A DNA stretch of 64,000 bases. Origin: Epiperipatus broadwayi (Eukaryota > Animalia > Onychophora). Each line of letters opens with the position of its first letter. The stretch's first letter is position 1. This document shows, piece by piece, positions 2,560 through 57,800 of the stretch. Under the pieces are notes generated by a model. That model saw nothing but the letters and a program-made list of their open reading frames with translations. It did not search any database and was not told the DNA's origin. Both the position numbers and the translations under genes were made by a program. The stretch covers positions 6,386,001 to 6,450,000 of the forward strand of contig JAQFVV010000009.1 of the NCBI GenBank assembly GCA_028023455.1, written 5' to 3'.

Positions 2560-3084
2560 TGCTAATGCATTATAAAATATCTAACATGGAAATTCAAAGG
2601 TTGTTTGAATTTTATCCAGTTGTTAAAAGTTTCTGAACCACTGAAAGTCAGATTAAGGTTTGCTGTTATTTTTTTTATGCTTCTATACATATAAAACTAA
2701 AGTAACCAAATAAAATTTTACAGTTGATTTTTAATTTTATATAATAAATTTGTTACTATCTATTTTTATAAACAAAAGTAAAAATAAATAAATTAATAAG
2801 CTTGATTGCATTGGACTGCCTTTTTTTTTTTTCTATTGTTGCAGTTTAAGTTTATAATGAGTGGACAAAAGATCTATTTTTGAACTTAAAAAATTCACAA
2901 ATCCAGAAAAAGTAACAGCATTATTAGCATTTTTATAACATTTTAAAAAAGTCCTAGGGCCTTTACATGATTGATGATATCTATATTGTTGTGTTCTATA
3001 AAAATTAGTTCAGATTTTATACATTTATCATTTTTTGATAAAATGAAATGTAATTGATGTCTTTAAATAAAATTTATTGTACAA

Positions 3085-3207
3085 TGCACTTACTTCGGGA
3101 TTTGCAACTAATTTTGCATATCCTCTCTATAAGTGCTATAATAATGATGTAACTATCCTGGAATTCAGGGTTTTCTCTGTTTTCCCTTGGAAACTTGCAT
3201 GACAAAT
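3085..3207 (+). ncRNA. Box H/ACA snoRNA, copy 1; predicted LSU rRNA pseudouridylation guide
   Basis: Hairpin 1: GCACTTA/TAAGTGC with upper stem GGAT-TTGCA/TGCAT-ATCC. H box ATAATA at 3138-3143. Hairpin 2: TGTAA/TTGCA and GGAA-TT-CAGGG/CTCTG-TT-TTCC. ACA at 3202-3204 plus 3 nt. Pocket arms CTATCCT and GGAAAC. Confidence 0.85.
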
Positions 3208-4383
3208 CTTACCATATATGTTATTATTTCTTCAAAGAAGATAACATACGCATTCATTGTTTTATTTAGTCATAAATTCTTTTGAAACATGAAAAAACTG
3301 CTCATTTTGTTCTCTTAAGTCTAAATTTTATTTTTGTGACAAATAATATAATAAAACTTTTTGGCTCAAACTTTTAACAAAGTTGACTTTAAATATAGAA
3401 CAGTTTTTTTATAGTTTTTATATAAAAAAGATTCTAAAACAAGGTGCCCAATCATTAATTTTGTGTGTAAATGCAGTAAGTGCAACTTCAGAAATAAATT
3501 ATGTACAAGTAGAAACTTGTTCCAAATTCAATGAATTGAAATAATTATATTTTTCTAGTACTTTTATATCAGCTATAATAATATCGCATTCAATGAATAT
3601 TGAATTATTAAAAATTGAGGGCAACACATTGATTTTCAACTATGTGCAATATATAAAATCAAATGATATTCAATTCTAACCATTTTTTTTTTTAAAACAC
3701 AAAAGTAGTAGAGAAATTTGGCAAAACCTTGAAATATCTGATCATTTTTAAGTCAGCCAGTATACCAGATTGTTTTATTTTTATTTTAAACAATAATAAT
3801 GTTTACTTTTTTTTTTTTCAATTAATAATTTTTTTAAAGCAATAAGTACAGCACCACTAATAAAATGTCAAAGCAACAAATATTCCATAATAAAGAAAAA
3901 TATTCTTGCCAAAAATTATTTATTACATAATTTTAAAAAAAAAGATTGATCACATATATATAGTCCAGTTGAACACATTCAGTTTCATTTGTTCATTATA
4001 GTTTAATAATGTTCTGCTCAGTTAGTACTTCGATGGTGAAATGATATTTAGTGGCTTTATAATTTTTTCTTAAATATGGCAGTACTTTAAGATCTAAGAC
4101 TTATGCTTGCAAATACTTGGAAACTTGTTAAATATCTTACGTTATTTTTCTAGAGAGTAAAATATGTATTTTGTAGTTTTATTTAGTCAAAATTTTGCTG
4201 AAAGTAATTATTATGTATTTTTTTAAATTAGTAATCAATAAAATGTGTAAAAATATTAGACCTTTGTGTGTGAGGTCTTTGAGCTGTTGAAATTGATTTA
4301 GAGTTGAGAATTTTTTTATGTACTTAGAATGAGTTTCTTTTGGTTGATAAAAACTATTTATGTTTTAAATTGAAAATATAAGA

Positions 4384-4508
4384 TGCACTAAGATTTGGGA
4401 TTTGCAACTTATTTTGCTAATCCTTTCTTATAAGTGCTATACTAATTATGTAACTATCCTGGAATTTAGAGCCATCTCTATTTTCTGTTGGAAACTTGCA
4501 TAACATTT
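4384..4508 (+). ncRNA. Box H/ACA snoRNA, copy 2 (paralogue of 3085-3207)
   Basis: Same architecture: H box ATACTA, ACA at 4503-4505, identical pocket arms CTATCCT and GGAAAC. Structure-preserving stem change TAGAG/CTCTA versus CAGGG/CTCTG in copy 1. Confidence 0.85.
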
Positions 4509-4916
4509 TGCCATGTGTTTTGTTTTATTTCTTCAACATTGCATTATAAATGTGGATTTATACATATTATCTTGACTACATATATTTTGAATGGAATATT
4601 AATATTATTAAAGGAATTTAAAACTTAACAAAAATCTCGTAACTTATAGTATGAATGTTTTAATTTCTTTTATTGTAATCATCACAAAAACTGCTTTGGA
4701 AAATAATGGATATAATTTTTGTATTTTTATTCATATTTTAAACTTTTGTATTTGAAAAAAAAATCCTTTTAAATGTTTCTAAGAAAATAAATTTGGACAA
4801 ATTTTATGTAATATAATTTTTAATTTTTTTGTTGTTGTAAATTTTTAAAAAAGTTATAGATATATATACATGATTAAACTGATATGCTAAGATTCCATGG
4901 TTATCATTATCATTTT

Positions 4917-39559: not shown

Positions 39560-40660
39560 ATTTTTTAACCTTGAATTAATTTTTAATTAGCATGCCTGAG
39601 GATAGGCTCTTCATCCAGTGGCCTAAGTTGCCCCATGTGTCCCTGAAGAGCTTTTCCGGTGTTAATAAGAGATCCCTGAACATAGTCTGAATAAATTTTT
39701 TACATATCTCCCATGGTTCTTTACTGCCTTGCTTAAAAACAAAATAATTCCTAGTTAACCACATGACATAAAGCAGGAACATTCCCATTCTAATCGCAGC
39801 AAAAACACCACTCGTTATAGCATCCTTGATTCTTAGAATTTTCATGTTAGCTGGCAGTACTCTGGTTATATTTTGTCTAGCAGGACTCAAAAATGGCCAA
39901 GCAGTAAAAATATGTCCAATAGCTTCATCCGCTACTTTACATAAGCTACATAGTGGTTCTATTTTAAGAAATTTCTATGATTTACTAAAAAATGATTCGT
40001 TGGCAAGGCTTTCAAATTAGATTTTATGATAAAGTCAATATGTTTGGCTTCCAAATAACAAAATTTTAATTTCCTGATTAGTAATCTGGTGGATAAATCA
40101 AGCTTAGTAGTTAATTCAGTAATGTTTGCATGCATGTATTTGTAAACTTGTCAGTAAGGGTTAGTATTGTCTATATCATCACATGATCACCATCTCTTAT
40201 ACTAGCACAATTGTTATTAAACAATGCAAAACTCTCCATACAGTAATGCCACCCTGTGCCAACCAGAGTAATCAATGGATGCATTGATTACTCTGGTTGG
40301 CACAGGGTGGCACTACTGTATGGAGAGAGTTTCGCCTTGTTTAGTATTGTCTATAATTGATGCCGTAACTTTGAAGAATTTTTTGGCATATGCTAGCAAC
40401 CCCATGGCCCATTTACTTTGTATGGGTGGCGGCGTGTCAGTAGGTTCAATCTCATCCTGTAATGAGTCCACTGGCAATCTTGCATTCATCGCCTTAAACA
40501 TTGAGAGGGATTTCTGAATGAAAAAGGTGTTAGATCATACAACCCGAGCCCATTCAGGTCTTTTGGTCTCTGCATCTTGACTAAACTGACGGTTACTGTT
40601 TTCCTCTTCCACAAGATGCACTGTGAGGTAATAACTAAGCCTTTTCATTAACAATTTTAG
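39560..40660 (-). mobile_element. 3' fragment of a decayed L1/Tx1-like LINE in a COMMD2 intron
   Basis: Zinc finger CSLCKVADEAIGHIFTAC, followed by a C-terminal region with W..RNYFVF and AATAAA near 39560. Confidence 0.7.
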
Positions 40661-52645: not shown

Positions 52646-54748
52646 ATGAGTGAATTAGAATATAGTCCCATTCCGATAGATGCTTCTATGCCAGAAGTAC
52701 CCATAGTAAGAGATTCGGATGTTTTCTACTTTGAATCTGAAGAAACCGAGAAGTCTGAAGAGGAAATCCCTACTGGTGGTACTAATCTTGAACCAATTGA
52801 TACAAATATATCAAACCCTAATGAAATTTATGAAGAGATTAGAGAATAAAAGGAAGAAAATAAGAGAGTATGAGGGAAGTTGGAAGAAAAAGGGGAAAGA
52901 AAATAAGAGAGTAGAAGGGATGGGAAAGAGAATGGAGAAGAGGATTGGAAGATAAAATAGAGAATAATAGAAAAGAAAATGAGAGTATAAGAGAGTTGAA
53001 AAGTGAAATGAAAGAAAATAATGAGAATATGATTAGAGAGTTGGAAGATAAAATGGAGAATAATATAAGAGGATTAGAGAATAAGATTGAAGAAAATAAT
53101 AAGAGTATAAAGATGTAAGAAGATAAGATGGAGGGATTTGAAAATAGAGTTGAGGAAAAGATTGAGAAAAAGATAGGAATATCAAGGGAAATTTTGAGGA
53201 AAGAGATAACCCAAAACAATGAGGATGTTAAGAGTTCACTGGAAAAATCTATAAGAGTTCACTGGAAAAATCTATAAAAGAACAGTTGGAAGGTTTTAGG
53301 AACACTGATATAGATGAACTCAAGAATCGATTTGTGAGTTTAGAGTTGAGTCGCAATCATAATAATGTGCGAGCTAAGGAAGATAATAATCTGTGCCATG
53401 ATTTAGAGGCTAGCAGAGATGATACCAAAGAAAAATTTACTCTATTGCAGAATGAAGTTGAAAAGGTAAAGATAAGCGTTGAGGAAGAGATTAAGCATCA
53501 ACAAATTCAATTCAAATTAGAAATGAGACATGAAATTGAGGATGTTTTCATCAAATACCAATGAAATACAGAAGAAAATCTCAAGTTTAAAAATAAAATA
53601 GGAAACACTGTAGAAGAATTGCGGAAAGAATTTAGTGAAAGTTTAATCAAGGAAGCTATTTATTCAGACCGTGTTAAAGAACAAAAGATTGAATTTGATA
53701 AACATTTCACAGAGTTTAAAAAGGAACAAGAAAAGTATGTAATAGAGCTACTAGAGAAGAGTAATAGGGAATCCCAAATATTAAGTACAGATAGTAGAAT
53801 GGAAAGTATCCAAGAAAAGCCAACTATTGTGTCCAGAGAGCTAAATGACAAAACTGATATTACTTTGGTTAGTCCAACAGAAACTTGCATGAAACAAGAA
53901 ATTCCTACTATTAATAATGATAATATGTCACTAAAAGAGAGAAGGCCTGTTGTTACCCACTTTTCAAAGATAAACCAGACAAAACGAACCATAGAAGCAA
54001 ACCCGAGCACTATCAGCTCTATGGCTCTACAGTTTATCCATAATCCTCTCGAGTACTTAGATAGTTTAGAGGAGTTGTTCTCTTTGTATGGATTGGCCGA
54101 AAATGAGAAATTGGCCATATCATGCAACCATCTGTATGCTTTGGCTAGAGATTGGTGGCAGTCTCTGTTTGATAAGCCAACCACATATGGGGACTTTAAA
54201 CACATGATACTCAGGTCCTTTTGGGGTGATGATAAGCAGGATAATATCCGCTATCAAATCTCCCAAGAAAAATATAGCCCATATAAAGTTATTCCCAATT
54301 TTTCCGAGGGCAAGCGGTGAGATTAAAAACGCTGATAGCATTCCCTCTTTCAGAGCATCAGATAGTGAGGATTCTCTGCCACAATCTACCTAGATCAATA
54401 GAGCAGATCCTAATTGCTGCTGATCGGTATGCTATTGAGGTGCCAGAAATCCTTGATGCTCTTGAAATCTCTGAGTATACTGGGGAAAATCATCCCAAAG
54501 TTAATAAAGAAAGACCGAATTATCCTTTAACAAATATAAATGTGAGGGAAACCCCAAGGGTTCAGAAACCTTTTGAAATGAGATATATTCCTCCTAAGCT
54601 GAGGCCTTCTCCATATTCTGGTGCCAATAGGCATTTAAGTAGGTCAAAAAGCAGACCAGTTATATTAAATCCTAAACCTTCAACTAGTGGTACAAACACT
54701 ATAGATAAGAAAGTTGGGGTAAAGCCCAAAATAAATCTGAAACTTTAA
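52646..54748 (+). pseudogene. Disrupted gag of element 2 (coiled-coil N-terminus plus capsid-like domain)
   Basis: MSELEYSPIP start, E/K-rich repeats at 52850-53220, and NPLEYLDSLEELF...ARDWW...TYGDFK..IL..FW retrotransposon gag signature. Broken by stops and frameshifts. Confidence 0.85.
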
Positions 54749-54813
54749 ACTGAACAGGTTCTTGTACAATAGTTCCTTCTTACAAGGACCTTCTGCTAAC
54801 AAAAGGAGGGACA

Positions 54814-57800
54814 ATGTGGATCTTAAACACCCTTGATCTAGATATTGATTATCTAGAACCCTGCACCCCAGATGAACCACCCATTATGTATAACTGCCCA
54901 ATTATAAAATTGGTTATTGAGGGGATAAGTATAGATGCTCTAATTGATTCAGGCAGCCATGCATCTATCTTGTCTGAAATTACATATGATAAAATTTCAA
55001 ACTTATCATCTGGTGTTCCCTCTTTACCAATAAAACAAATTCAAGTAACATTAGCTAACGGGAAAAGGATCAAACTTTGTAATCAACAGGTCTGGATAGG
55101 TTTTAAAATTAATCAAACTGAGTTTGAACATGTGTTTCTTGTTATGCCTGGACTGATTCATGAAGCTATCATAGGCTCAGACTTTATGATTAACAATAAT
55201 TGTATAGTTGATTATCAACAAAATTTATTTACCTGTAAAAATCAGGTCTTTCAGTTAGAATATGGATATCATAATTTCCCCAGTCAATTAATTACTGTGC
55301 ACCCATGAACCATCAATTGATGTTAGTATCAAAACTAAAATTGCCACCTTAGTTTTCTAAATTTAGGAGTAGTGGAAAATTTATATCAATTGACGTGTAA
55401 ATACAAAAACATTTCCTCTAAAGTCCCAGGTATAATAGAAGGATATACTCATAGGATTAAGTTGAGGAGCACTGAGCCTTTCCAACAGAAAATGTACCCC
55501 ATTCCTTACCAATATCAAAGTGAAGTACAAAGTCAAATTGACAGGATGCTGGAATGGCGAATTATTAAAAAGTGCCTTCTGCTTACGTTAACCCTCTTGT
55601 AATTATTAGAAAGAAGGATAGCACTATTCGAGTTTGCCTGGACGCTCGAATGTTAAACCAGATGGCTGTCCCGGAGAATGATATTCTTCCACCAGTACGA
55701 GCTCTTAGTAAAAGGAGGTCAATTTTCTCCACATTTGAGATTACGGCCAGTTATTGGCAAATACCACTCATGATGACCAAAAATATACGGCTTTCCGTTT
55801 CCAGGGCCAATCATATATTTTTACAAGGATGCCCTTTGGTCTTGCTAATAGTGGTGCTGGTCTGATCAGATGCCTAGACATGATTTTTTCGAAACAATTA
55901 AAAGAGAAAATCATCATGTACATGGACGATATCGTCATCGCTTCAAGTAATTTGGCAGAGCACATGGAACACTTGCAAATGTTTTTCCAAAAGTATGCCT
56001 CCAAAAATTTAAAGATTAACTTGGAGAAATGCAGTATTGCAGCAGAAGAAATCATTTTCTTGGGGACATTTAGTCTACGCTCATGGGATTAAGCCCCATC
56101 CAGAAAAGATTGCTGCTATACAAGGTTTCCCTATTCCTAAAACTAAAAAGCAACTTCGCTCTTTTCTCAGTCTATGCAACTATTATCACAAATTTTATGA
56201 GGACTTTGCCGGTGATACTGTTCAATTATACAACTTGTTCTGAGAGTTCGGGTTGGACTACTGATCATACAAAAGAGTTTAACACAGTCAAGACTAATTT
56301 CCTCAAGAAGGTCATCTTACATTACCCTGATTTTAAAAAAGAAATTTTTTGTACAAACAGACAGTAGTCACTAGGGTCTAGGAGTAGTATTATATCAACT
56401 TAATGATAATCAGGAGCCTCAAGTTCTCGACTTTTTAAGTAGACGTTTGAAAGGGGCTGAACTGAACTATTCCATCACAGAAAAGGAAGCACTAGTGGTT
56501 GTTTGGGCATTTCAGAAACTGCGCCAATTCTTGTTAGGCTCGGAAGTGATTGTTTTATCAGACCATAGAAGTTTAAAATTTTTAAACCAAAGTTATCTCA
56601 ATAATGAGAGACTTATTAGGAGCTTATATCTACAATTCAACTATAGCATTGTATATGCTGAAGGTAGAAATAATATTCAGCTGATATTCTGAGCCGCCAC
56701 CCTGTCTGTATTGTGCCCCAACATCCAAATACTCAACATATTATTGTAAATAACTTAAACCAAATTGTGGACGAATCTATAGTACAAGACTATGATCATT
56801 TTGCCTCTATTCAGAATCAAGATGCAAAATTAAACAATATTATCTCTACTTTGGAAAATTCTCATCTTAGGAATAATAATAATGATAAGAATATTCAGAA
56901 AATAATTGTAAGATATAAATTTAATCATGGGATCTTGATGTATAAGTCTAATTTAAAAGATGATAAATCATGGCGAGTCGTCGTACCATCATGTGTTGTA
57001 AATAAATTAATCGACTATGCCCACGGTAAATATGGACACTTTGGTGCCCCAAAGATCTACCATGTATTAAAACCTTATTTTTTTTGGTCTCACATGTATA
57101 GAGACATTGTGAAAAAGATAAATACATGTAATATTTGTATGAAATTAAAATATTGTATCAAATCATTTGCCGGTATTTTACAGCAAATAATTCCCAGTAA
57201 ACCAAATGAATTACTCGTGCTTGATTTTTACAGACCTCTCCCACTCTACAACCGGCAAAAATTATATTAGTTGCATATGACGGGTTCTCTAAATTAGTTT
57301 CCACATATCCTATACCAAGAACAGATGCTAAAAGTACTATCAGATACTTAACTGATTACCAGTTTTTATTGGTTGGTAAACCCGATATAATCTTGACTGA
57401 TCATGGCACTGCCTTTATATTAAGAAAATGGAGCCAATGGGTTCAAATGCAAGGTATTAAACAAATTATGAGTTCAATAAGGAACCCTCAGTCAAATCCT
57501 TGCAAGCGTGTGATGCGGGAGCTCAGTAGACTCTTTAGGGTCTATGTGCAAGGTGACCATAAACAATGGCTTAAAAAGCTTTCTGAATTGACTCACTATA
57601 TTAATGTTACTTTCAATGAGTCTACAGGATTTACTCCAATCCGATTACACTATGGGCAGCACGAATCTCTGCTCATTAAGACTCCCATTACCCTTCATTA
57701 TGGAGGAGATTGATAGACAGTGACATAGTTAGGGCACATAATAGGCTCATAAAAATGGGTCAAAAACGGGTGAAACAATCAAAAACTAAGCCATATCCAT

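Follow-up and report, generated by a model that had tools for sequence, protein, structure and literature searches.

The window, by which we mean the whole 64,000-nucleotide stretch of Epiperipatus broadwayi DNA that was analyzed, contains on its plus strand two closely similar elements that we interpret as candidate genes for a box H/ACA small nucleolar RNA (snoRNA). Copy 1 occupies positions 3085 to 3207 and adopts a double-hairpin fold with a predicted mature RNA of ~123 nt, and copy 2, identified by its fold and its covariance model score, occupies positions 4384 to 4508. The two are direct repeats of ~125 nt with a start-to-start distance of 1300-1301 nt and ~83% identity (21 differences in 123 aligned columns), as anticipated by an earlier sequence-only reading that had noticed a repeat of this size present twice, ~1.3 kb apart. 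A covariance model built from these two copies only (R1) scored them at 148 bits (copy 1) and 152 bits (copy 2). When copy 1 was compared by BLAST with the 5.6-Gb E. broadwayi genome, the only matches were copies 1 and 2, and a genome search with R1, in which 150 first-look candidates were scored, returned the same two copies and no others. The spacer between them (1.1 kb) is unique sequence except for one low-complexity stretch. With only two copies found in 5.6 Gb, the element is not like a transposable element, and the two-copy count together with the unique spacer ruled out a dispersed repeat; the many scattered genomic copies that the earlier reading had named as evidence against snoRNA genes were seen in neither search.

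Similarity between the two loci was limited to positions 3053 to 3235 and 4356 to 4536 (i.e., the snoRNA and ~30 nt on either side), outside of which identity fell to the 30 to 35% background of DNA with 25% G+C. The ~30-nt flanks are alike between the copies, and the downstream flank includes a TTATTTCTTCAA block; this resemblance could reflect a signal for processing or splicing, or merely the edge of the duplicated segment. Between the two intact copies, positions 4116 to 4203 (plus strand) contain the 3' guide arm CTTGGAAACTTG and the downstream flank, with 70% identity over 103 nt to positions 3186 to 3287 (E = 2e-4 in a small search). This weak match may mark the decayed remnant of a third copy.

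RNAs of the H/ACA class are stable nucleolar molecules of ~120 to 140 nt that are bound by dyskerin, Nop10, Nhp2, and Gar1; they are characterized by two hairpins, a single-stranded hinge carrying an H box (ANANNA), and an ACA box three nt from the mature 3' end, and the target position precedes the H or ACA box by 14 to 16 nt. Both copies folded into a hairpin-H box-hairpin-ACA arrangement with an internal loop in each hairpin, consistent with what had been proposed from the letters of the sequence, and the folding energies were -38.3 kcal/mol for copy 1 (z = -6.5) and -35.1 kcal/mol for copy 2 (z = -5.4), with z scores computed against dinucleotide shuffles. The 5' hairpin of copy 1 (3086 to 3136) has a small internal pocket with the arms CUUC(G) and (U)CUCUA, and is followed by the H box ATAATA (3138 to 3143), which fits ANANNA and lies 14 nt past the top of the 5' pocket. 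The 3' hairpin of copy 1 (3147 to 3200), as delineated by the fold and by pair counts, comprises a lower stem (ATGTAA/TTGCAT), a pocket, and an upper stem; its 5' guide arm CTATCCT (3153 to 3159) and 3' guide arm GGAAAC (3189 to 3194), both assigned from the target scan described below, precede the ACA box at 3202 to 3204. In copy 2, the H box ATACTA (4439 to 4444) has one substitution and is still ANANNA, and the target scan and the alignment of the copies placed the same two arms at 4454 to 4460 (CTATCCT) and 4490 to 4495 (GGAAAC), with the ACA box at 4503 to 4505. Written as RNA, the 3' hairpin consists of the lower stem AUGUAA/UUGCAU, the arms CUAUCCU and (C/G)UUGGAAAC, and the upper stem GGAA..CAGGG/CUCUG..UUCC, and one base separates it from ACA. 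In both copies, the guide base opposite the nucleotide 5' of the target U is 14 nt upstream of ACA, and the 3' pocket of each copy and the 5' pocket of copy 1 fall inside the 14 to 16-nt rule; a pocket 14 nt from ACA had also been given in the sequence-only reading.

The differences between the two copies are unevenly placed. In the 3' hairpin (54 columns), 0/27 positions of the guide arms and lower stem differed, compared to 8/27 elsewhere in that hairpin (p = 0.002). No differences were found in the ACA box, the 3' guide arms, or the 3' lower stem, in keeping with the earlier description of CTATCCT and GGAAAC as invariant, and three of the four bases in the apical loop of the 3' hairpin differ. 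Elsewhere the changes fall in loops or preserve base pairs, and one pair is lost from the 5' lower stem of copy 2 (U-A to an A.A mismatch). In the stems, a C-G pair is fully compensated as U-A, a G.U pair becomes A-U, and a G-C pair becomes G.U; the first two of these changes correspond to the CAGGG/CTCTG to TAGAG/CTCTA change that had been correctly read from the repeat. In the 5' hairpin, an internal mismatch is displaced by one pair between the copies. Covariation support from two sequences is thin, and a shuffle control of the pair changes is uninformative at n = 2, so the constraint argument rests on the location of the changes.

To define possible targets, the rRNA sequences of the species itself were used. 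One rDNA locus (L021) contains the 5.8S and the full large subunit (LSU) sequence (2320 bits), another (L023) contains the small subunit (SSU) sequence, and LSU positions are given here in L021 numbering. The target string was found in true LSU rDNA at L021 and also at L015 and L016, i.e., the complementary site whose lack would have counted against the proposal is present. A large nuclear contig contains, at locus L013, an LSU pseudogene that has decayed but is of the divergent, G+C-rich type seen in this rDNA, which is therefore endogenous. The matches to a first 16-mer pattern were rejected as rDNA, and the true rDNA was located with a longer pattern. Several places outside rDNA also carry the 16-mer GTTTCCCTCAGGATAG, which is more frequent there than its NNN-pattern neighbors and may belong to a repeat; among these places, L003 (G000:C6:14748377-14751392), L008, and L009 gave no rRNA match. 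Several other rDNA-derived sequences were encountered: L013 (G000:C6353:2683304-2686326) is LSU-derived and heavily mutated towards A+T, and L018 (with L014 on G000:C6362) is a full-length, low-scoring LSU (1613 bits) with a rearranged segment and with neither SSU nor 5.8S upstream. Both L013 and L018 are dispersed rDNA pseudogenes, each lying in a contig of several megabases at a distance from any complete rDNA unit. On a 57.6-kb contig (L023/L024, G000:C14004), a minus-strand LSU lies ~8 kb upstream of a plus-strand SSU, head to head rather than in the usual tandem order, which reflects either a misassembly or an inverted junction within the rDNA.

All uridines of the LSU, 5.8S, and SSU rRNAs were scanned using the pairing geometry of H/ACA RNAs with a few registers allowed. 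For the 3' pocket of both copies, a single site stood out, LSU U1003 in cgaaguuuccc[U]caggauagcgga, with a match score of 14 compared to 9.5 for the runner-up rRNA site. The 5' arm CTATCCT pairs with LSU AGGAUAG (1005 to 1011) and the 3' arm GGAAAC pairs with LSU GUUUCC (996 to 1001), giving 6+7 Watson-Crick pairs (13 bp), or 8+7 (15) when two lower-stem pairs are opened, with duplex energies of -8.5 and -8.8 kcal/mol. Shuffled arms reached the U1003 score or above in 0/300 and 1/300 controls, and the chance expectation for 13-bp matches of this kind is ~6e-4. The guide is thus complementary to the UUUCCC-U-CAGGAUAG site, and the scan of the species' own rDNA and its controls support the 13-bp pairing of GUUUCC and AGGAUAG that had been proposed from eukaryotic rRNA in general, with the U of CCC-U-CAGG as the predicted target of the 3' pocket. 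In the canonical H/ACA pocket, the two arms pair with the target sequences that flank an unpaired U-N. Here, the guide U at position 3188 lies opposite C1002, the 5' neighbor of the target U, forming a mismatch found in both copies, and because C1002 faces this U three bases (C-U-C) are left unpaired instead of two. The earlier placement of the target U in the pocket therefore stands, but it passed over these three unpaired bases.

The position of this uridine relative to known modifications was established from published data. A human RNase T1 fragment, UUUCCC-Psi-CAG, was assigned by mass spectrometry to 28S 1658-1667 (PMC6182160), and from this span the modified base is 28S-1664 (1677 in the new numbering), which is 96.7% modified (PMC6182160). 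A second human pseudouridine, Psi1670 (1683 in the new numbering), is found 6 nt downstream of 1664 as the U of GGAUAG (PMC6182160). Yeast 25S rRNA has Psi960 (guided by snR8) and Psi966 (guided by snR43), which are likewise 6 nt apart and are both marked conserved (PMC5699541). The human homologue of U1003 is 28S Psi1664/1677, and from the equal spacing of 960/966 and 1664/1670 we infer that its yeast homologue is 25S Psi960. The sequence-only reading was right that the target uridine is a conserved pseudouridine of yeast and human, and wrong in naming yeast U966 (snR43) and human 28S U1683; the actual site is 960/1664 (1677). The U of GGA-U-AG (Psi966/1683) is not left unpaired in the pocket and cannot be the target, because in this model it is paired inside the duplex with the 5' arm CUAUCCU.

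The arms of the 5' pocket differ between the copies (CUUCG/UCUCU in copy 1 versus AUUUG/UUUCU in copy 2), and the 5' pocket of copy 2 can close on itself in the fold. Both 5' pockets can nevertheless pair with LSU AGAGA-U-U-CGAAG around U2466, the best rRNA site for this pocket (5+5 Watson-Crick bp for copy 1), since the C-to-U differences turn G-C pairs into G.U pairs. Shuffled arms equaled the U2466 score in 96/300 and 209/300 controls, so no significant rRNA target was obtained for this pocket, consistent with the earlier view that it is not conserved and has no assignable target. Moreover, the canonical register leads to U2466, whereas the homologue of human Psi3709 (in AAAU-Psi-CAA-Psi-G, 72% modified) is the adjoining U2467. 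U2466 was accordingly set aside as a target, being no better than shuffled arms and lying beside, not on, the Psi3709 homologue. Probably, the 5' hairpin has a structural role alone, or else it guides a target that is not assignable from these matches. We regard as unlikely the idea that both pockets work in a register with one more unpaired nucleotide on the 5' side of the target U, such that U1003 and U2467 would both be modified. If it were true, one velvet-worm RNA would join two conserved sites that are served by separate guides in humans, and the shifted register would make the three-base pocket the normal geometry of this RNA.

The surroundings of the copies were also inspected. Open reading frames within 20 kb of the copies yielded no credible Pfam match and no credible coding exon, and neither a host gene nor a promoter was identified near them. 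Given that introns in this genome are very large (PMC9985152), the entire window may lie within an intron. Clear coding signals in the window are confined to an LTR-retrotransposon protease and integrase at 54.8 to 57.7 kb; the string of open reading frames at 53619 to 57713 (plus strand) has aspartyl-protease, integrase zinc-binding, and integrase core domains along with a faint Arc/gag capsid match, and represents an LTR (Ty3/gypsy-like) retrotransposon that is apparently broken into several frames. A weak ceN36-1-like match at 40165 to 40325 (minus strand) was discarded as a snoRNA on the basis of a perfect palindrome: positions 40232 to 40327 are an inverted repeat of 46 bp, perfectly paired and closed by a loop of 4 nt (-101 kcal/mol for a 171-nt stretch). 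Its appearance is that of a fold-back or terminal-inverted-repeat structure rather than of an RNA gene.

On this evidence, the two elements are, in our judgment, quite probably paralogous genes for one box H/ACA snoRNA of E. broadwayi with U1003 as the predicted 3' target, and the sequence-only identification of the repeats as H/ACA snoRNAs is supported by fold, boxes, spacing, constraint, and target match. The architecture, the box spacing, the occurrence of the target in the rRNA of the species itself, the excess of the match over controls, the constraint, and the copy number were observed directly, and from them we infer expression, assembly into a ribonucleoprotein, and modification of the target. 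Dyskerin, a gene for which is present in the genome, would join Nop10, Nhp2, and Gar1 on each RNA; the 3' pocket would hold LSU GUUUCC-CUC-AGGAUAG through two short duplexes with the arms GGAAAC and CUAUCCU; and U1003 would thereby be presented to dyskerin for isomerization to pseudouridine. The U.C mismatch and the three unpaired target bases in the 3' pocket count against this interpretation, as do the failure of every Rfam family to reach its gathering score, the thin covariation support, the lack of a host gene or promoter among the surroundings inspected, and the A.A mismatch and self-closing 5' pocket of copy 2.

The same mismatch, found beside the target in both copies, is one of several features that would fit relics of a former snoRNA gene, unexpressed or nonfunctional, with another guide elsewhere serving the site. 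In copy 2, the 5' lower stem is weakened and the 5' pocket can close on itself, a possible decayed third copy lies close by, and no host gene was seen near the copies. Dead copies, however, would not retain the pattern of constraint described above, in which the guide arms, 3' lower stem, and ACA box are intact while the loops and surroundings have diverged to background, and no other guide with both arms was detected in the 50 kb scanned at the dyskerin locus (part of a possibly larger gene). We therefore consider relics improbable. Less probable again is a genuine H/ACA RNA acting on some other substrate (an snRNA, an mRNA, or another rRNA site), for which the LSU match would be coincidental or secondary. 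The 3' arm would pair perfectly, and over more bases, with a sequence of the GUUUCCAA form, and the LSU match requires the mismatch beside the target U; against this, the match comprises 13 to 15 Watson-Crick pairs at a pseudouridine site that ranks among the most conserved, far above the controls, and a Cajal-body (snRNA-directed) RNA is unlikely, given that a CAB box is absent from the apical loops (CUAAUU, UUUU/CCAU). Finally, a chance pair of hairpins or a repeat fragment is highly improbable, for although hairpins and A-rich boxes are common in a region of 25% G+C and the reverse strand also folds well (z = -4.9), plus-strand G.U pairs become A.C mismatches on the opposite strand, the constraint pattern, box spacing, and target match are specific to the plus strand, and the genome holds only the two copies, with unique sequence between them.

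Taking the elements as a functional pair of snoRNA genes, their main value lies in annotation. No report of snoRNAs in Onychophora was found in the literature searched, and the genome paper (PMC9985152) makes no mention of them, so that, going by this literature, the present case is the first well-argued H/ACA snoRNA for the phylum. The genes were previously unannotated and would encode an ordinary housekeeping RNA of a well-known class that holds no surprise for a specialist; annotation aside, the understanding of snoRNAs is unchanged. The assignment does predict that velvet worms, too, make the LSU pseudouridine common to yeast and human, and it offers a natural test of mismatch tolerance beside the target in an H/ACA pocket.

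Comparison to curated families placed the element in the class but in no family. The Infernal/Rfam scan that had been suggested as a check gave sub-threshold matches running from end to end of the element exclusively for H/ACA families and exclusively on the plus strand (SNORA40, 24.9 bits; ceN43, 21.2 bits; snR189; S_pombe_snR90; and snopsi28S-3316), and no family at its gathering score when the window and each copy were searched at gathering and permissive thresholds. Because no match approaches a gathering score, the element is H/ACA by architecture and a member of no curated family. SNORA40 and ceN43 provided the best end-to-end alignments, which reflect a generic likeness of H/ACA shape; their scores are far under the gathering thresholds of 51 and 50, respectively, and the consensus pocket arms of SNORA40 differ from those of the velvet-worm element.

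By predicted target, the closest human RNA is SNORA56 (ACA56), which guides 28S-1664 and is located in DKC1 (PMC6466398; PMC10696674). The two share the target nucleotide (28S U1664/1677), the class, the size, and the two-hairpin form. They differ in sequence, with no detectable Rfam family match for the velvet-worm element (SNORA56 and snR8 were absent from the matches to a 138-nt stretch even at E <= 10), and in that SNORA56 also guides 18S-296 (PMC6466398), whereas no such second target was found here. Their genomic settings differ as well: vertebrate SNORA56 lies in an intron of DKC1, whereas the dyskerin gene of E. broadwayi (DKCLD and TruB_N exons) is on contig C11 and the copies are on C9, which ruled out dyskerin as the host gene. 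The yeast RNA snR8 resembles the element in guiding 25S Psi960, the counterpart of the U1003 site; unlike what was found for the element, it also guides Psi986, and the element gave no Rfam match to snR8. In yeast, most snoRNAs are transcribed independently. The RNA named in the sequence-only reading, snR43, also belongs to the H/ACA snoRNAs and works on the same helix region of LSU domain II. It guides 25S Psi966, 6 nt downstream, and 5.8S Psi73 (PMC5699541). The likeness of predicted target thus supports the velvet-worm element as a putative functional counterpart of SNORA56 and snR8 at the U1003 site.
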